Virus record (IMG/VR): IMGVR_UViG_3300042350_004528
Coordinates: 234,834-298,833 of that record
Length of the DNA stretch: 64,000 nucleotides
Reading direction: 5' to 3' (one strand)
Shown piece by piece: positions 3,218-46,604 of this stretch. A program made the translations under genes and the position numbers. Numbering within the stretch: position 1 is the first letter of the stretch; every line of letters starts with the position of its first letter. The notes beneath the pieces are model-generated. The model saw nothing but the letters and a program-made list of their open reading frames with translations, did not search any database and had not been told where the DNA came from.

Positions 3218-3232
3218 ATTATTTTCTATTAG

Positions 3233-3306
3233 TGGGCCCTGCTGGGTTCGAACCAGCGACCACCTGATTATGAGTCAGACGCTCTAACCGACTGAGCTAA
3301 GGGCCC
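3233..3306 (-). tRNA. tRNA CAT, Ile2-like (lysidine type)
   Basis: GGGCCCT acceptor, TCTGA-CTCATAA-TCAGG anticodon arm, body resembles bacterial ileX; no encoded CCA. Confidence 0.85.
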
Positions 3307-3336
3307 TAATTTTATACAAAGATAGTAATTAATTTT

Positions 3337-3840
3337 TTATTTTCCAAATCCAGTATCGGTAAAAAATCTGAGCGTCTCGGCCATAAATGTATTTGTATCA
3401 AAATTTGGGTCGAATGTTAAATTATCATCCACAATAATATTATCATCCTCATCAACTTTATATTGGTACATTTCAAAACTGTTTGGGGTAGTTTTTATAG
3501 GATCAACTTTAATAATATCACCCTCAAATTGAACCCCACATAGTTCACAAAAATGTACAACTTTATAACTATTCGTATCAGGCATTGGGATTAGAATGTC
3601 TTTATGTGTTAAACTCATCGCCTTTGAACCATCTTCATTTGTGTGATTGCAACTCAATTTTATCTCATAAATTTGTTTTTCATACGAAGTTATGTGATTA
3701 TTTTTCGATTCGATTAAAATATCAACTTTTTTCTTGAGCTCTCGTTCAATGGAGTTTAGATCTCGAGTAACCTTTTCTTTATTAATCTCAAGTTCGATTA
3801 TTTTTTTACGGCCCTCTATAAACGGATTCTTTGATTCCAT
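3337..3840 (-). CDS. Hypothetical protein (coiled coil + CxH...CxxC)
   Basis: 167-aa ORF. Confidence 0.6.
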   Translation of the reverse strand: MESKNPFIEGRKKIIELEINKEKVTRDLNSIERELKKKVDILIESKNNHITSYEKQIYEIKLSCNHTNEDGSKAMSLTHKDILIPMPDTNSYKVVHFCELCGVQFEGDIIKVDPIKTTPNSFEMYQYKVDEDDNIIVDDNLTFDPNFDTNTFMAETLRFFTDTGFGK

Positions 3841-10764: not shown

Positions 10765-11388
10765 TTACAAAACTTTAATGACATTTTCTGGACTAATTGC
10801 ATGATAATTAGTGCCAACCGTTATTATCTTAATCCCATCAATCTCCATAATAATAGGTTTTGGGGCATCGTTTGATAAAATCATTAACTCGGAATCATGG
10901 GTGTAGCCACACTCAACCAAAGCGGTTGTTAGCCTATGAATAATATAAACGCTGAGGTAATAATCTAAAACTTTCATATGGTAATTATAATCAAGCTCCT
11001 TTTTACCCGTCATACTACCCTGTCCGCTACCATCACATTCTTTACAATCAACAATACTCTCGCAACATTCGCACTCAATCTTACCATCACCATCACATGC
11101 ATAACAATCATCGTATTCATCAATCATTGGAACCGTGTTCAACTTAGTAATTAAATCACCTAATTTTACTGGTACATTATTATCCAGTTTCTGGTTCTTT
11201 AATACAAATGAAAAATCTGGCATACCATCGGTTTTAATTGTGATCTCATCATCTGGTATTTGCTCTTTTGGTACCATAATTAAAAGTCGAGAGTCTGTTG
11301 CGCAATAATAATCTTCGTACTCAAAATACGCATTTAGTTTGTCCGCTGCAAACATTTTAGCTGCATCTAGTAATTTAATCTTACTCAT
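10765..11388 (-). CDS. Hypothetical protein with DnaJ-type Cys-rich zinc finger
   Basis: CYACDGDG...CECC...CKECDGSG; start placed at MSKIK. Confidence 0.65.
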   Translation of the reverse strand: MSKIKLLDAAKMFAADKLNAYFEYEDYYCATDSRLLIMVPKEQIPDDEITIKTDGMPDFSFVLKNQKLDNNVPVKLGDLITKLNTVPMIDEYDDCYACDGDGKIECECCESIVDCKECDGSGQGSMTGKKELDYNYHMKVLDYYLSVYIIHRLTTALVECGYTHDSELMILSNDAPKPIIMEIDGIKIITVGTNYHAISPENVIKVL

Positions 11389-28078: not shown

Positions 28079-28138
28079 ACTTCTTTATTTTATTATAAAT
28101 AGTATGAGATAAATAAAAGTAATAAAAAATTAGATTTG

Positions 28139-28209
28139 AGCTGGTAGTTGGAATCGAACCAATCTCTATAAGTTTTGCAGACTTATTGCACTCCATGTAC
28201 ATTACCAGC
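28139..28209 (-). tRNA. tRNA-Cys(GCA)
   Basis: TAAGT-CTGCAAA-ACTTA, U73. Confidence 0.85.
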
Positions 28210-28216
28210 ATATTAG

Positions 28217-28287
28217 CACGGGTGGAAGGATTCGAACCTCCATCGCTGGTTTTGGAGACCAGCATTCTACCATTGAAATACACCCGT
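28217..28287 (-). tRNA. tRNA-Trp(CCA)
   Basis: CTGGT-CTCCAAA-ACCAG. Confidence 0.9.
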
Positions 28288-28293
28288 ATATTG

Positions 28294-28363
28294 TGGACAC
28301 AGTGGGAATCGAACCCAAACGATCTCCTTGCAAGGGAGTCGACCTGCCTTCGGTATCTGGCCC
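28294..28363 (-). tRNA. tRNA-Ala(TGC), atypical
   Basis: CTCC-CTTGCAA-GGAG, G3:U70 kept, irregular acceptor and D arm. Confidence 0.7.
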
Positions 28364-28366
28364 ATA

Positions 28367-28453
28367 TGGCGGAGAGCGGAGTACTCGAAACTCATACCCG
28401 AAAGTACCACTCGCTTAGCAGGCGGTGACAGCACCCTGGCTGTGTCACTCTCC
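28367..28453 (-). tRNA. tRNA-Ser(GCT), atypical, CCA encoded
   Basis: CGC-CTGCTAA-GCG, long variable arm, G73, 5-bp D-stem. Confidence 0.75.
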
Positions 28454-28458
28454 ATTTG

Positions 28459-28534
28459 TCGGGAAAGCTGGATTCGAACCAGCGATCTCTCGCGTCCAAG
28501 GCGAGCGAGGATGACCTGACTCCTCCATTTCCCG
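28459..28534 (-). tRNA. tRNA-Pro(TGG)
   Basis: CTCGC-CTTGGAC-GCGAG, C1-G72, A73. Confidence 0.9.
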
Positions 28535-28539
28535 TTTTG

Positions 28540-28612
28540 TAGGGTAGACAGGGTTCGAACCTGCGACCCCGTGCTCCCAAAGCACGTGCGCTACCAACTG
28601 CGCTACTACCCT
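28540..28612 (-). tRNA. tRNA-Pro(TGG), second copy
   Basis: CGTGC-TTTGGGA-GCACG, A1-U72. Confidence 0.9.
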
Positions 28613-28619
28613 ATGTTTG

Positions 28620-28705
28620 TCGGAGTGGAGGGATTCGAACCCCCTGAGTTTCCAATGTGCCAGATTTACAGTCTGGTGCCCATCCGCCGTCTGAGCAGCA
28701 CTCCG
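28620..28705 (-). tRNA. tRNA-Tyr(GTA)
   Basis: CCAGA-CTGTAAA-TCTGG, long variable arm, C1-G72. Confidence 0.9.
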
Positions 28706-28720
28706 AAATGATATAAAACA

Positions 28721-28752
28721 AAAAACCCTGAGATTTTGTCCCAGGGCTTCTA
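28721..28752 (-). terminator. Intrinsic terminator of attenuator A
   Basis: CCCTGGGA-CAAAA-TCTCAGGG followed by a U tract; its 5' arm (TAGAAGCCCTG) is complementary to 28801-28811 in the leader ORF. Confidence 0.85.
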
Positions 28753-28785
28753 CTATTTTATATAATTAGTTTCCAAAAAAAATCG

Positions 28786-28884
28786 TTAACTAAAAGACAA
28801 TAGAAGCCCTGTTCCAGCTGGATATGCTGGAGCTGCTGGACAACTATACGGCCATGCCACGATATTTTTGTTCAAATTTTTCAT
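28786..28884 (-). CDS. Leader peptide A (32 aa) MKNLNKNIVAWPYSCPAAPAYPAGTGLLLSFS
   Basis: Hand translated; codons 10-23 are all Ala/Trp/Pro/Tyr/Ser(AGT)/Cys, the species in the downstream array. Confidence 0.8.
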   Translation of the reverse strand: MKNLNKNIVAWPYSCPAAPAYPAGTGLLLSFS

Positions 28885-28985
28885 TTTGTCTTTATAAATA
28901 GTGTGTTCTTTTAAAAAGTGATACAAATATAAGCACAGTTTTTTAAATAAGCAAGTTTTTTTAAAAATTAATCATAAATTTCTGT

Positions 28986-29029
28986 TATATCGGTCATGTG
29001 ATACAAATATATCGGTCATGTGATACAAA
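28986..29029. repeat. 22-bp tandem duplication
   Basis: TATATCGGTCATGTGATACAAA x2. Confidence 0.9.
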
Positions 29030-29051
29030 CCAGGCGCTTACCACTCACAAT

Positions 29052-29129
29052 TGGGGCGAACGATGAGGTTCGAACTCACGACCTCCTGAACCACAATCAG
29101 GCGCTCTAACCAACTGAGCTACGTCCGCC
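29052..29129 (-). tRNA. tRNA-His(GTG) with encoded G-1, C73 and CCA
   Basis: CCTGA-TTGTGGT-TCAGG. Confidence 0.92.
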
Positions 29130-29139
29130 ATGTAATCCC

Positions 29140-29982
29140 CTACCTGTTGGTGGGGATTAAGTTATTTAAATATTCTCTATTTTGAGTAAAGATTGGTGTT
29201 TCGACATCCAATTCCCAAGCGCTTCTGGTGTAAACATCCTTTGGATCAATCACAACCGTATCACGATTGACTTCCGCATTGGCACTTTTACGAACAAACG
29301 TCTTTTCAATTTTTCTGATTATACCACCACGTTTTTCTCTTGGTGAGTAATCATTCCAATTTGTACCAGCCTGAAATATCAATTCTTGCATACCATCGGT
29401 CTTAACCCCATGTAATTGTTTTGGTGAGTATAAACTCTGAGCGACCGATGAAATTGAATTTCTGGTCGCATCTTGTTGTCTCCAGATGAAATAATTCTCA
29501 ACCTCAACTTTTTGTGGGATTTGAAATACCCTGGCATCAAACATAGCCAATTTAGGTTCGCTGGCGTATCTTTTATCCGTCACAGACTTTCTCTCGATAA
29601 CATGTAGATTCTTAATATAACGATCCATTCTCAATTTATTAAAGATGGCTGTTGCCATTGAGGCTGAAACGCTCGCCATTTTCTGTAAGTTATTATCGAA
29701 CCAAGCTTGTGTGCCCTCATCTTCAAAATCGGTGATCAAAATTGAAATCTCATCTGATTGCACATACGCAAACTTAGCACCCATAATGTTTTTACATAGA
29801 TATGCCGCTGTCTCATCCATATCATCAATCAAATCCAAATCAAATGGCCTTCTCAAACCTTTTGTATAGGTGTGAAAAGCCTTACCATCAATTCTGATAA
29901 TGGTGTAACCTCTTCTTGGTAATGAAATACGAGTTCTATCCTCATAGTTCGATTTCATTCTGTCTCCTAATGCGTCTTTCAT
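29140..29982 (-). CDS. thg1: Thg1-like tRNA(His) guanylyltransferase / 3'-5' polymerase
   Basis: RIDGKAFHTYT, YVQSDEIS, FDARVF, WRQQDATRNSIS. Confidence 0.92.
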   Translation of the reverse strand: MKDALGDRMKSNYEDRTRISLPRRGYTIIRIDGKAFHTYTKGLRRPFDLDLIDDMDETAAYLCKNIMGAKFAYVQSDEISILITDFEDEGTQAWFDNNLQKMASVSASMATAIFNKLRMDRYIKNLHVIERKSVTDKRYASEPKLAMFDARVFQIPQKVEVENYFIWRQQDATRNSISSVAQSLYSPKQLHGVKTDGMQELIFQAGTNWNDYSPREKRGGIIRKIEKTFVRKSANAEVNRDTVVIDPKDVYTRSAWELDVETPIFTQNREYLNNLIPTNR

Positions 29983-30799: not shown

Positions 30800-30808
30800 A
30801 TATAAAAC

Positions 30809-30837
30809 AAAAAACCCAGGTGGTTTACCTGGGTTTT
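30809..30837 (-). terminator. Intrinsic terminator of attenuator B
   Basis: AAAACCCAGGT-AAACC-ACCTGGGTTTT + U tract; AACCCAG is complementary to CTGGGTT in leader B (30885-30891). Confidence 0.85.
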
Positions 30838-30862
30838 CTTTTCTAACTCTATGTTCTTTAGT

Positions 30863-30949
30863 TTAACATAAATTAGGCAATACTAACCCAGCCCAGTTTT
30901 TCACCGAGATATGTTTAATTGACTTAATAATGTTAACCATTGTGTTCAT
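30863..30949 (-). CDS. Leader peptide B (28 aa) MNTMVNIIKSIKHISVKNWAGLVLPNLC
   Basis: Codons 5-17 dominated by Val/Ile/Lys/Ser(TCN)/His, matching downstream tRNAs. Confidence 0.75.
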   Translation of the reverse strand: MNTMVNIIKSIKHISVKNWAGLVLPNLC

Positions 30950-31022
30950 TTTACTGATTTTTAAATATATAGTGCAAAAGTAAGCAAAGTTTTTTAAATA
31001 TGCAAGTTTTTTCAAAAAAAAA

Positions 31023-40255: not shown

Positions 40256-40262
40256 ATAAAAT

Positions 40263-40295
40263 AAAAAACCCTGAGTTGCTTAGCACCCCAGGGTT
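40263..40295 (-). terminator. Intrinsic terminator of attenuator C
   Basis: AACCCTGGG...CTCAGGGTT + U tract immediately upstream of tRNA-Arg. Confidence 0.8.
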
Positions 40296-40320
40296 GATTT
40301 TTCATAGTTAAAATCTTTGT

Positions 40321-40401
40321 TTACATATGAACATAGCTTACCCCAGGCTCTTTTGTCAAGAGTTGTAATTGTAACTGGCGTTGTAAGCTTAGTGTTCTCA
40401 T
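40321..40401 (-). CDS. Leader peptide C (26 aa) MRTLSLQRQLQLQLLTKEPGVSYVHM
   Basis: 11 of codons 4-15 are Leu/Gln/Arg(CGC), matching downstream Leu(TAA,TAG), Gln, Arg(ACG). Confidence 0.8.
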   Translation of the reverse strand: MRTLSLQRQLQLQLLTKEPGVSYVHM

Positions 40402-40442
40402 GTCTATATAAATATGTTCGTTTTTAAAAAAGTGCAACTATC

Positions 40443-40524
40443 GGACTAACCTTTACAAACTTTCCGAAGAAAGCTTTTGGGGTTGAACCAAATTTAACCA
40501 GAGTTAGTTGCTGAATTTAGTCCC
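40443..40524 (-). ncRNA. Stem + TTCAGCAA motif small RNA candidate
   Basis: GGACTAA/TTAGTCC closing stem, TTCAGCAA after the 5' arm, starts just after a TAnnTTTG promoter. Confidence 0.55.
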
Positions 40525-40580
40525 AATTGCGATACAAAGATAAGAAATGTTTTTTTAATAAACAAGTATTTTTGAAAATT

Positions 40581-42898: not shown

Positions 42899-43175
42899 AA
42901 GATGCCTCATTCTGGGGTTTGATTGAGGTCTAGTTACATCGGTTTCTTTCGCTGTTTCAAGAACCTGCCGCACTTCTGCTGGTAAAACCCGTCAACACTA
43001 CTCGGCGGAGATGTGTCGCTCTCCGTTACTCCGACCCCCAGCATTTTAACTATAAAGGCTCATTACCACCCTATGAGCGGATGATTGCTCTCCAGTACAG
43101 TTTTCGGTTACCATCTGGGTATTAACCGTGATCCTTTAGTGAGATCCAAACACTCTGAGTACCCCTTACTCGTTG

Positions 43176-43248
43176 AGCGGTAGACAGGATTCGAACCTGC
43201 GACCCTCACCTTGGCAAGGTGATGCTCTACCAACTGAGCTACTACCGC
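43176..43248 (-). tRNA. tRNA-Gly(GCC)
   Basis: TCACC-TTGCCAA-GGTGA. Confidence 0.92.
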
Positions 43249-43362
43249 TTAAAAGACAGCCCACAACGTCCACATTATACCGTTGGTGGGGAATGACGAC
43301 CAGTCAAGTTGTGGTTCTTACTTTATGTCGCCTGCAACAGGTGCCACCCACTTCTGTCTTAG

Positions 43363-43452
43363 CACTCGACATGGGAATCGAACCCACCACCCTTAGCGCA
43401 CCACTGTTATGGTGATTCGAACACCGCTACTAAGGGCTGACCCCAATCGAGT
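43363..43452 (-). ncRNA. tRNA-like RNA with two T-loop hairpins and no D arm or anticodon
   Basis: ACTCGAT/GTCGAGT acceptor; GGTG-TTCGAAT-CACC and GTGGG-TTCGATT-CCCAT. Confidence 0.6.
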
Positions 43453-43665
43453 AAGTTGGGGAACCTATTTACAAGCTTTTGGTTCCCCGATTGATCAAGT
43501 TATTTAATTATTTTAACCTCAAATAAGGCATTCACATCGCCAATAAAGGGGATCGGCTTTAAGGTTTAACCGCCATAACTCTCAGATACGCTCGTCATGT
43601 GACTCTTTCTCCGTTTATTTTAAGATGCACGGATCCCTCTCTGATGGGAGTACAAAACATCTGCT

Positions 43666-43743
43666 TGGTTGCGGGAACGGGATTCGAACCCGTGTAATTC
43701 GGCTTATGAGACCGAGCTGGAACCAACTCCAGTCCACCCCGCA
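43666..43743 (-). tRNA. tRNA-Met(CAT), atypical, CCA encoded
   Basis: TCGGT-CTCATAA-GCCGA; fMet-like 5' end, extended D-stem. Confidence 0.85.
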
Positions 43744-44285
43744 GTAATGAAAGGCTCTGAATCGTCCCTGCGCCATTCTCAGGAGAGCCTTTCGGTTTTA
43801 AATAGATTCGGCGATCGATTATTCCCACTGATATACCTAAGATTCGTTAGATCATAGTAACCATCCACAATGGGCCTATACTCTTACACTCCGTCCGTAT
43901 TTACTCACCTAATCAAATGCGTCATAGGTATTTCAGATACAGCGTTCAGTGCTACCCTCAGGACTTCTTCACCCTACCCCCATAGTTACGTGGCAGATCT
44001 CGCTCGGAAGAAAAGAGCGTGTATCGTAGAATTGTCCAGTATTTCTACGACTTGTGGATTACAACACGACCAATTAAGGCCCCTTACCCTCTCAATCCAT
44101 AATGAGGGACTCGGTCATACTCGTTCCCAACGTATCCGACTGAACTTCCCCATGTCGGTAAACCCCGTTTATTAGAGGTTATACGAATTTCACTTCTTGT
44201 GTGACCTTCCCCATAGCCTTGGAGCCTTCTAGCCAGGTTCACACACCATAACGGATGAGTACGTCCGTTAATCGTGGGGTCTTTT

Positions 44286-44377
44286 GCTGATTAAAGGGAA
44301 TTGAACCCAATCCTCCAGCCCTGTCCACTTCTATCCTGAAGCAACTAGGGCCAGTGTGCCCATTACACTATAACCAA
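44286..44377 (-). ncRNA. tRNA-like RNA with a 24-nt insert replacing the anticodon loop
   Basis: TTGGTTA/TAATCAG acceptor, GTGT/ACAC D-stem, GGCCCT/AGGGCT stem, GGG-TTCAATT-CCC T-arm. Confidence 0.6.
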
Positions 44378-44426
44378 TCGAGAGTTTCGAACCTCTCAGA
44401 CTCAAGTTAATTACTCTTGAGTTTTG

Positions 44427-44498
44427 TAGCGGGGGTGGGAATCGAACCCACGACCTCCAGGTTATGAGCCTGGCGAGCTACCTCTGCTCTACCCCGCA
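44427..44498 (-). tRNA. tRNA-fMet(CAT)
   Basis: U1xU72 mismatch, A11-U24, CCAGG-CTCATAA-CCTGG. Confidence 0.88.
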
Positions 44499-44504
44499 AT
44501 GTTG

Positions 44505-44576
44505 TACTCCCTACGGGAATCGAACCCGTCTTTTCAGGATGAAAACCTGATGTCCTAACCGATAGACGAAAGGAGC
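44505..44576 (-). tRNA. tRNA-Glu(TTC)
   Basis: TCAGG-TTTTCAT-CCTGA. Confidence 0.92.
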
Positions 44577-44953
44577 GTAAATTGATGATTCGACCACATT
44601 TCTTACCAGAGCGGAACTAAGGGGTCTATTGGTACCGTACCCTCATGCACTCGATTGGGATTGCAGCCCCGTGAGTCTCCCGATGCGCCAGATTGTCTTT
44701 CCTATACTTTCGCTAACCTATCTGTTATTGGGTTCTGGCAGTGTCCCAGTTAGCATACTCCCATAGTACTTTTTCCTCATCAATTCTTTTTTTTTGCCTT
44801 TACCTTTCAAAGACTAAGTAGGTTTAGTTGCGGACTTTCACGTCTTATGCGTCCATAAGACTCCTTCCTCTGAGTGCTTCTCTTTTTACAGTCTTTAAAC
44901 TATCAAGGTACGTTATCTCAGTTTTCAACACAAAACCACTGTGTTAGCAATCG

Positions 44954-45027
44954 CGATCCCGATAGGATTCGAACCTATGACCTACTGCTTAGAAGGCAGT
45001 TGCTCTATCCAGCTGAGCTACGGGATC
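44954..45027 (-). tRNA. tRNA-Arg(TCT)
   Basis: ACTGC-CTTCTAA-GCAGT. Confidence 0.92.
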
Positions 45028-45036
45028 GTAAATTTC

Positions 45037-45098
45037 GGGTTGATCTTTTTAGTCGGATTTACAAGTCTGATTTTTTAAGATTTGCTGAACTCAACCCC
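45037..45098 (-). ncRNA. Stem + TTCAGCAA motif small RNA candidate
   Basis: GGGTTGA/TCAACCC closing stem, TTCAGCAAA, internal CAGACTTGTAAATCC resembling the Tyr anticodon arm with one extra nt. Confidence 0.55.
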
Positions 45099-45116
45099 AA
45101 TAAGTAAATAAAACAC

Positions 45117-45235
45117 AGGATGCGTTTATACGTGCTCTAACCAACTGAGCTATCGACCTCATACGAAGCCGAGTGGGACTCGAACCCACGACCCCGAGGT
45201 TGACATCCTAAAGTTTAATTTGCGGAATGCATCCT
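45117..45235 (-). ncRNA. Circularly permuted tRNA-like RNA (YrlA/Y-RNA-like)
   Basis: AGGATGC/GCATCCT terminal stem + TTCCGCAAA; T-arm precedes D-arm; acceptor stem closed by a GTAT loop. Confidence 0.75.
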
Positions 45236-45249
45236 CTTTGTTTTATTTG

Positions 45250-45321
45250 CGGTCTATGCGGGAATCGAACCCGCCTCACCGCCGTGACAGGGCGGCATCC
45301 TAGCCGATGAACGAATAGACC
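45250..45321 (-). tRNA. tRNA-Asp(GTC)
   Basis: CCGCC-CTGTCAC-GGCGG, G73. Confidence 0.92.
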
Positions 45322-45327
45322 GTTTAG

Positions 45328-45449
45328 AGCCCAGAGCTGGATTCGAACCAGCGCCTTTTTTTTCCATAAAAAATTGTTAGATAGTGATTTGCTGAAATCA
45401 TCCACACTGGATGACTCTTTTTTTAATGCTACCGCTACACCATCTGGGC
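45328..45449 (-). ncRNA. tRNA-like RNA with anticodon arm replaced by a hairpin + TTCAGCAA module
   Basis: GCCCAGA/TCTGGGC acceptor, D-loop-like segment, TCATCCA-GTG-TGGATGA hairpin + TTTCAGCAAA, GCTGG-TTCGAAT-CCAGC. Confidence 0.7.
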
Positions 45450-45453
45450 TTTG

Positions 45454-45527
45454 CTCCCCCGTCAGGGCTCGAACCTGAGACCTACTGATTAACAGTCAGT
45501 TGCTCTAACCAGCTGAGCTACAGAGGA
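45454..45527 (-). tRNA. tRNA-Asn(GTT)
   Basis: ACTGA-CTGTTAA-TCAGT. Confidence 0.92.
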
Positions 45528-45710
45528 ATATTTGATGGTGTCACAACTATATACCATCAGCTACGGAACCCTTCTGTTAATAAGTAAGTAGGAGATTTAA
45601 AAATCTCGTCCGTATCAAATCCACGCCATTGGTTACGTTGTCTCACGACAAGAGGCTTTACCAAGGCAAAGTTTTAATTTTTTCACCAATATGTCAAAGA
45701 ACAATCTTTG

Positions 45711-45783
45711 AGCCACATGACGGGATCGAACCGCCGACCTACTGATTACAAATCAGTTGCTCTACCAGCTGAGCTAATGTGGC
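45711..45783 (-). tRNA. tRNA-Thr(TGT)
   Basis: ACTGA-TTTGTAA-TCAGT. Confidence 0.92.
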
Positions 45784-45788
45784 ATCTG

Positions 45789-45861
45789 TGGTGCGGGGAG
45801 GAATCGAACCTCCGACACAGGGATTTTCAGTCCCTTGCTCTACCAACTGAGCTACCGCACC
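45789..45861 (-). tRNA. tRNA-Phe(GAA)
   Basis: AGGGA-CTGAAAA-TCCCT. Confidence 0.92.
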
Positions 45862-46001
45862 AAGTAAAGATAATGGTTGGATTCCCGTTACACCCAACTC
45901 TGTACTGCTTCTTGAGTTTTACAAGCGCTTGGCAGAGGGAGCTGATTTCTTCGGCCCAAACTCGCTTGTCGACAGCTTATTTGGAGAAACCCATTATCTT
46001 C

Positions 46002-46100
46002 GTAGCGTATGTGGGATTCGAACCTAAACCAACTATTCATGCTTCGTTGGCCACCTGTACACGGGCTCATGACTGCGCCGTGCTCTCCAAGAGTACGCTA
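46002..46100 (-). ncRNA. tRNA-like RNA (acceptor + T-loop, non-canonical core)
   Basis: TAGCGTA/TACGCTA acceptor, GG-TTCGAAT-CC T-loop, internal TCATG/CATGA stem; no 7-nt anticodon loop found. Confidence 0.5.
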
Positions 46101-46334
46101 TGTATTTTAAAAGTTACAATTCATCGGAATGTGTTTGTTTTCCATTAAAAGTAGAGTTTGTATTATTTGCCGAATACATTCCCGAATTGTGGTACAAAAG
46201 TAAGAACAAAATTTTTAACCTGCAAATACTTTTGAAACTTTTTTCATTTTTTTTCAAAGAACTTATTTTAACGCTTGCTCTCGCAATTGTGGTACAAATG
46301 TAAGAACGAAACTTCAAACTCGCAAACTTTCAAC

Positions 46335-46369
46335 AAAAAAAAACCCGAACTTTTGGTTCGGGCTTTCTA
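46335..46369 (-). terminator. Intrinsic terminator of attenuator D
   Basis: GCCCGAAC-CAAAA-GTTCGGGT + long U tract; TAGAAAGCCCG is perfectly complementary to 46401-46411 in leader D. Confidence 0.88.
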
Positions 46370-46391
46370 CTATGGTTTACACAATGAATAA

Positions 46392-46469
46392 TTACACCAA
46401 TAGAAAGCCCGTAGATGAGTCCTCGCCTCTTCCAAAGAATCTATTCGTTGTATTTATCACTCTTTTCAT
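46392..46469 (-). CDS. Leader peptide D (25 aa) MKRVINTTNRFFGRGEDSSTGFLLV
   Basis: 14 of codons 3-17 are read by tRNAs in the 42743-45861 array. Confidence 0.8.
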   Translation of the reverse strand: MKRVINTTNRFFGRGEDSSTGFLLV

Positions 46470-46604
46470 TGAATGTTTTATAAGTTTTGTATAAATATAG
46501 GTAACTTTATAAAAAAGTCAAGTTTTTGAAAAAAAATATTTTTATCTACGATAAATACTTTATTATTGGTTGATATAACTTATATTTAAGTTATATTTTT
46601 TTTA

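Follow-up and report, generated by a model that had tools for sequence, protein, structure and literature searches.

A short leader upstream of a seven-gene tRNA array in a large uncultivated phage appears to act as a ribosome-mediated transcription attenuator that monitors how much is available of the tRNA species encoded by its own operon, a reading to which we assign a probability of about 80%. The initial annotation had interpreted this element, here called module A, as a leader-peptide attenuator, and its interpretation is supported by all sequence-level features of the locus, by sister modules, by a diagonal matrix of leaders against arrays, by leaders that co-vary with their tRNA sets and by an antiterminator pairing that co-varies with the terminator. 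We further consider it likely that in a clade of large phages, whose hosts are probably Bacteroidota, every tRNA operon is gated by a leader that lists the downstream tRNAs codon by codon, which would constitute a demand-driven and self-limiting sensor of the tRNA pool.

The tRNA-rich region and the anatomy of module A

The stretch of DNA analyzed as a whole (64,000 nucleotides; hereafter the window) is part of an uncultivated, A+T-rich large-phage contig, IMGVR_UViG_3300042350_004528 (298,833 bp, IMG/VR). ARAGORN called 27 tRNA genes in the window, all on the minus strand, and Rfam placed a tmRNA on the same strand at gathering score; with the two non-canonical genes described below, the total used here is 29. 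Four leader modules (A, B, C and D) lie upstream of 28 of these 29 genes, and the sole gene without one, tRNA-Met (3232-3306), has a promoter match (3317-3347) directly upstream. Phage genes surround the tRNA genes, including one for a Thg1-like tRNA-His guanylyltransferase, a label that cultured-phage homologues carry as their annotation. The Thg1-like gene (29140-29982, minus strand) stops 11 nt before tRNA-His (29052-29128, minus strand), and both are downstream of array B, whose leader has a His codon. The phage tmRNA (38774-39152, minus strand; Rfam, 78.8 bits) directly follows a tRNA-Leu(UAA) gene in the unit headed by the candidate attenuator of module C. Between 26000 and 47000, Rfam at gathering score returned nothing besides tRNAs and the tmRNA, and sub-threshold matches were uninformative. 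The search for a close cultured relative found none, as the tRNA region matched only generic tRNA segments in cultured-phage records, and a Thg1 protein search of such records gave scattered hosts and no host inference.

The motif TTG-N20-TAnnTTTG, which we take to be a Bacteroidetes-type -33/-7 promoter, has 17 matches in the window where 2.5 are expected, and 16 of these lie on the minus strand, which is the coding strand; this promoter type makes a host from the Bacteroidota probable. The same excess supports the reading of TATATTTG as a promoter element; TATATTTG is present upstream of the leader together with the TATTTATA motif, both of which the initial annotation had listed (Table 1). 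A 25-nt promoter consensus is found in the window only at modules A, B and C, once each. From the module A promoter, transcription would start near 28918. Motifs resembling TATTTATA in their A/T-richness lie 10-15 nt before the start codon in other modules and, since one precedes every leader start codon, TATTTATA may belong to a translation start region that operates without a Shine-Dalgarno sequence. Between tRNA-His and the module A promoter lies a tandem direct repeat of ~22 nt, with two copies of TTTGTATCACATGACCGATATA (28985-29032, minus strand), that resembles the promoter's -7 and start region and is present as a single copy in a close relative (contig L106).

Table 1. Positions of module A, array A and the sister modules in the window
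Feature	Coordinates	Strand	Description
Promoter, module A	28924..28954	-	TTG 28954-28952, 20-nt spacer, TATATTTG 28931-28924; exact TTG-N20-TAnnTTTG match
5' untranslated region	28885..28917	-	A/U-rich; holds TATTTATA motif at 28900-28893
Leader ORF	28786..28884	-	32 codons + TAA; ATG 28884, TAA 28788-28786
Sensor block, codons 10-23	28816..28857	-	14 consecutive codons readable by the downstream Tyr, Pro, Ser(GCU), Ala(UGC), Trp and Cys tRNAs
Possible segment 1, codons 11-16	28837..28854	-	Could pair with segment 2 as protector or pause structure; tentative
Segment 2, predicted antiterminator 5' strand, codons 25-30	28796..28812	-	Perfect 11-mer 28811-28801
Segment 3, common to predicted antiterminator and terminator	28741..28756	-	Perfect 11-mer 28752-28742
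Predicted intrinsic terminator	28712..28746	-	5' arm 28746-28739, loop 28738-28734, 3' arm 28733-28726, U-tract from 28725
Array A (regulated)	28138..28705	-	Seven tRNA genes
tRNA-Tyr	28705-28619	-
tRNA-Pro, first	28612-28539	-
tRNA-Pro, second	28534-28458	-
Non-canonical, putative tRNA-Ser(GCU)	about 28453-28366	-
Non-canonical, putative tRNA-Ala(UGC)	about 28364-28292	-
tRNA-Trp	28287-28216	-
tRNA-Cys	28209-28138	-
Module B	30802..31013	-	Promoter 31005-30975, leader ORF 30949-30863, terminator 30839-30809
Module C	40256..40573	-	Promoter 40565-40535, structured 5' element 40533-40432, leader ORF 40401-40321, terminator about 40295-40258
Module D	46331..46521	-	Promoter-like site 46521-46492, leader ORF 46469-46392, terminator 46362-46335

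Codons 10-23 of the leader read exactly as they had been listed by the initial annotation, and its ORF, coordinates and count of four Pro codons were likewise confirmed. This block translates to AWPYSCPAAPAYPA (Ala-Trp-Pro-Tyr-Ser-Cys-Pro-Ala-Ala-Pro-Ala-Tyr-Pro-Ala), with 5 Ala, 4 Pro, 2 Tyr, 1 Trp, 1 Cys and 1 Ser(AGT) codons. Comparison of codons with the array also bears out the statement that all six tRNA species are represented (6/6), proline by four codons for two tRNAs. A search of a protein database with the 46-aa extended leader ORF gave no match.

Module A ends in a hairpin with a folding energy of -16.3 kcal/mol, and an independent scanner places a terminator at 28751-28721; exact matches to its tail, GGGTTTTTTRTTTTAT, occur in the window only at modules A, B and C. 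The tRNA-Tyr gene begins seven nucleotides past the last base of the terminator motif. An internal promoter in this interval was considered and rejected, as it spans only 7 nt and holds no match to TTG-N20-TAnnTTTG; with neither room nor motif for a promoter after the terminator, array A must be transcribed through it.

The array order Tyr-Pro-Pro-Ser-Ala-Trp-Cys that had been given for the downstream genes is right, with the qualification that two of its members are non-canonical and bear putative Ser and Ala identities. Only five of the seven tRNAs were called by ARAGORN and by Rfam at gathering score, leaving a gap of 170 nt made up of two conserved cloverleaves with GCU and UGC in their anticodon loops. 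The Ala(UGC) gene scores 25.8 bits against the tRNA cut-off of 29; it is found in five other contigs with three compensatory pairs, the G-U where the alanine identity pair is expected is invariant, the acceptor stem is interrupted by a one-base bulge, and an A bulges out of the anticodon stem. In the Ser-like gene, which has a long variable arm, nine compensatory pairs were counted across four sequences; an extended anticodon stem with a bulged A is a feature of both genes. The aberrant tRNA-Ala pattern was absent from 185,579 cellular genomes and gave no lead to a host or prophage. Independent support for the Ala and Ser(AGY) identities comes from the rule, developed below, that leader codons correspond to the tRNAs of the operon.

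Correspondence between leader codons and tRNA arrays

Codons of the array A set make up 17% of the codons in the window's long ORFs, and against this background a run of 14 out of 14 has a probability of ~2e-11 per position, or ~3e-6 over the 127,918 positions in six frames. Leader A is the sole locus in the 64-kb window, across all six frames, with at least 11 of 14 such codons. We considered and rejected an origin of the block from tRNA gene fragments, as the signal is codon-periodic and in frame.

Each of the other three leaders in the window is likewise enriched for codons of its own array. The sensor block of module B is rich in Val, Ile, Lys, Ser-UCN and His codons and lies upstream of Lys-Val-Ile-Ser(UGA), with tRNA-His further down its unit; that of module C consists of Leu, Gln and Arg(CGC) codons upstream of Arg(ACG)-Leu(UAG)-Leu(UAA)-Gln, followed by Leu(UAA) and the tmRNA; and the leader of module D has 13 consecutive matching codons (Ile-AUA, Asn, Thr, Arg-AGA, Phe, Gly, Glu, Asp) upstream of a large Phe...Ile(UAU) cluster. 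Two more promoter-like sites (46325-46295 and 46225-46195) lie between the module D terminator and the first tRNA, and another (30552-30522) lies inside array B between tRNA-Ile and tRNA-Ser, so attenuation would not be the sole input everywhere.

The correspondence is specific to cognate pairs. In a matrix of leaders by arrays for eight modules, scored by the best 12-codon window, diagonal values are 10-12 and off-diagonal values 1-10, apart from orthologous pairs; the highest off-diagonal values fall on modules with overlapping arrays, and the diagonal sum was reached by only 2 of 40,320 permutations. Across 17 non-redundant modules, the leaders hold at least one codon for 146 of the 151 tRNA species of their units, where the limits of the transcription units and the wobble rules are the analyst's choices and orthologous modules in the counts are not independent observations. 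Binomial probabilities per module range from 1.6e-2 to 9e-8, large tRNA sets having little discriminating power (the background for L132 is 0.84). A blind scan of ~110 loci for a short ORF, a terminator and a tRNA recovered only the matched leaders and one further site, in L042, which consists of the tails of two overlapping reading frames.

Related uncultivated phages contain at least 13 more distinct modules. The leader A ORF is identical in two metagenome contigs (L106 and L107) and has an orthologue in L099/L108. L099, at about 80% protein identity, holds orthologues of modules A, B and C in which leader and array change together: its array A reads Tyr, Pro, Ser(UGA), Ser(GCU), Ala, Trp, Cys, with Ser(UGA) where the window has its second Pro tRNA, and leader A of this contig has three UCN codons and two Pro codons versus four in the window, while its module B has an Ile(UAU) tRNA in the array and an AUA codon in the leader, both of which the window's module B lacks. 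The first ~8 residues and a Gly-x-Gly-Leu-like tail of the leader are conserved between the window and L099. An exact search for the promoter pattern in IMG/VR gave 19 matches, mostly unrelated, with L099 as the informative one; in another contig, L097, the same promoter stands directly before a tRNA with no leader.

More distant phages, reached through Thg1, the aberrant tRNA-Ala and a small protein encoded between array B and tRNA-His, share the same build with unrelated leader sequences. L120 combines the array Cys-Met-His-Ser-Leu-Leu with a leader of Met, Leu, Cys, His and Ser codons; L074 has an Ile, Leu, Ser, Thr array and a leader with Ser, Ile, Thr and His codons; and in L132, which has a unit of 19-20 tRNAs, the first ~30 leader codons are all decodable by the unit and touch all 19 species. 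Synteny based on Thg1 covered 80 loci, most of them without nearby tRNAs, and only L074 was informative.

Several further elements adjoin these modules and arrays. Some modules, but not module A, have a structured element of 70-100 nt right after the promoter (40432-40533 and 46125-46205 in the window; 10982-11056 and 1424-1524 in L099). A long stem closes this element, and inside it lie a UUCAGCAA-like motif and a hairpin that shows compensatory changes between the window and L099 (z = -2.4 and -4.5). The big cluster at ~42900-46100 (minus strand) has G+C-richer spacers of 130-680 nt between its tRNAs, for example at 45327-45449, 45040-45160, 44286-44377 and 46000-46095. These spacers hold tRNA-like halves split by inserts with a common UUCAGCAA motif; ARAGORN in intron mode called two 'intron-containing' tRNAs among them, Rfam gave no match, and the spacers could represent tRNA introns, a small mobile element or structured RNAs of a new kind. 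A conserved motif, TCTTTGACATATTGG, adjoins tRNA genes in the window (45686-45700), in L115 (about 4570 and 6990), in L113 and in L114, and could serve as another type of promoter or as a signal for processing.

The predicted RNA switch and competing explanations

The 11-nt complementarity on which the initial annotation had based an antiterminator is present: CAGGGCTTCTA (28811-28801, codons 25-28) is perfectly complementary to TAGAAGCCCTG (28752-28742), a stretch that overlaps the terminator 5' arm. The resulting duplex between segments 2 and 3, with 11 perfect base pairs and ~15 in total, has a predicted energy of -24.5 kcal/mol (z = -5.1), and the unconstrained minimum-free-energy fold of 28935-28706 uses this long-range pairing (z = -3.25), with 0 of 200 shuffled sequences as stable. 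Module D has its own 11-nt perfect pair (46411-46401 with 46369-46359). In all nine modules analyzed, the best leader pairing with the terminator 5' arm lies just 3' of the sensor block and inside the ORF, at -11.7 to -24.9 kcal/mol, and the terminators fold at -14.7 to -17.2 kcal/mol. A MAFFT alignment of ten modules misaligns the antiterminator strand, and covariation was therefore assessed through matrices of cognate versus non-cognate duplexes: cognate pairs of leader and terminator arm beat 20,000 of 20,000 random reassignments among the nine modules even though their sequences differ, so the antiterminator pairing co-varies with the terminator. A pairing between segments 1 and 2 is predicted inside the sensor block in seven of the nine modules; it is weak, and its cognate specificity is marginal (663 of 20,000 permutations).

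These elements suggest a mode of operation familiar from attenuators. Transcription would begin at the TTG/TATATTTG promoter and a ribosome would load on the 32-codon leader. With all needed tRNAs available and charged, the ribosome would run into segment 2 and on to the stop codon; segment 2, whether occupied or later re-paired with segment 1, would leave segment 3 free for segment 4, the terminator would form, and the polymerase would stop seven bases short of tRNA-Tyr. Scarcity of any single one of the six species would stall the ribosome in the sensor block, and the free segment 2 would pair with segment 3 first, preventing the terminator and allowing the seven tRNA genes to be transcribed. 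Since the tRNA products would relieve the stall, the arrangement would form a homeostatic negative feedback loop with OR logic over the tRNAs of the operon. We infer from this arrangement that the leader is translated, that ribosomes stall on it, in which direction the operon responds and what part segment 1 plays. A ribosome that had reached the stop codon in module B or C would leave segment 2 physically uncovered. Leader A carries one sensor codon each for Trp, Cys and Ser(AGY), and such single codons would confer low sensitivity unless the tRNA were nearly absent.

Among the competing explanations, the one that fares best is that the leader is translated and senses the same tRNAs, while the stalled ribosome alters the processing or stability of the tRNA precursor, through RNase access or tmRNA-linked cleavage, or only couples to the polymerase, with the hairpins incidental. 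The terminator lies 7-45 nt from the first tRNA, which would bring processing and termination physically close; a phage tmRNA is encoded in unit C; and the weakness of the pairing between segments 1 and 2 points the same way. However, every module has a strong hairpin followed by a U-tract, and the competing pairing always follows the sensor block immediately and varies in step with the arm of the terminator, features that would be superfluous for processing alone, and we regard this explanation as improbable.

It is more improbable still that the leader is just a small phage gene of the usual kind, followed by a terminator of its own, with the tRNAs being expressed by constitutive leak-through and the codon match arising by coincidence or as a side effect of selection on the peptide. 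Short ORFs followed by terminators are common, and the N-terminal residues and tail conserved in L099 would fit this view. Chance is nevertheless excluded by the permutations and the six-frame scan, the center of the peptide is not conserved between orthologues and changes with the tRNA set, the same rule linking codons to arrays holds in 17 modules with unrelated peptides, and the conserved tail coincides with the RNA pairing strand.

Equally hard to sustain is a protein- or RNA-binding switch in which a phage or host factor, or an uncharged tRNA in the manner of a T-box, selects the hairpin on an untranslated RNA: alternative hairpins alone would also fit a riboswitch and modules C, L099-A and L099-C have the extra structured 5' element, but module A has no such element, Rfam gave no match to a T-box or any riboswitch between 26000 and 47000, and an RNA that is not translated would not retain an open frame with in-frame start and stop and a codon-periodic match to tRNAs in 17 modules.

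Relation to known regulatory systems

Transcription attenuation controlled by a stalled ribosome of the kind we propose for module A would bear on several questions. It would offer a simple and testable explanation of how phages rich in tRNA genes set the dose of their tRNAs, and it might allow the phage to react to mismatched codon usage, to the disappearance of host tRNAs in the course of infection or to anticodon nucleases of the host, with a possible link to host tRNA-targeting defenses. Leader codons would predict the decoding identity of non-canonical tRNA genes missed by standard finders, thereby providing a new annotation tool, and the modules would be compact programmable parts that act as codon-specific sensors of tRNA availability.

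The control of bacterial tRNA genes is generally regarded as global and as exerted at the promoter. Operons for tRNA and rRNA are subject to growth-rate and stringent control by ppGpp and the initiating NTP and, like the phage modules, fit tRNA synthesis to translational demand; that control acts at initiation, globally and without regard to tRNA species, whereas the phage element would act after initiation and on one operon. In the full text of ~8.4 million papers and preprints, which excludes subscription-only literature, we found no description of leader-peptide attenuation of tRNA genes, and the one co-occurrence that was checked proved to be unrelated; a tRNA-gene attenuator that senses its own tRNAs is thus probably novel.

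T-box riboswitches also sense tRNA status and place a terminator/antiterminator switch before translation-related genes. They bind uncharged tRNA through a specifier codon and the T-box bulge without translation; the phage element, by contrast, is an ORF, and the Rfam T-box model had no match between 26000 and 47000. The leader-peptide attenuator of a translation component is exemplified by pheST of E. coli, which encodes phenylalanyl-tRNA synthetase and whose pheM leader reads tRNA charging. It controls a synthetase protein in response to one amino acid, whereas the phage modules would control tRNA genes through a sensor that enumerates them.

The closest likeness is to the attenuators of amino acid operons (trpL, hisL, leuL, thrL, ilvL and pheL), in which a short ORF with regulatory codons precedes a terminator before the first gene and an antiterminator shares the terminator 5' arm. 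Their regulatory codons overlap a possible segment 1, and some leaders are multivalent, thr responding to Thr and Ile and ilv to Ile, Leu and Val. The phage modules have the same build of short ORF, codon block, terminator and antiterminator, and module A displays four features of the class: a short ORF after a promoter, a block of regulatory codons, a terminator before the first gene and an antiterminator formed with the distal part of the ORF. Searched at the gathering threshold between 26000 and 47000, a range that includes module A, the curated Rfam leader families gave no match, the best sub-threshold one being His_leader on module C (17.8 bits against a cut-off of 49). Unlike trpL-type attenuators, the phage modules are encoded by phages, several per genome, and would regulate tRNAs instead of enzymes, such that the sensed molecule would be of the same kind as the product; and where trpL-type leaders have a run of codons for one to three amino acids, the phage sensors cover up to 6-19 tRNA species with one to five codons each. 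If our reading is correct, leader-peptide attenuation would extend from metabolism to the decoding machinery itself.
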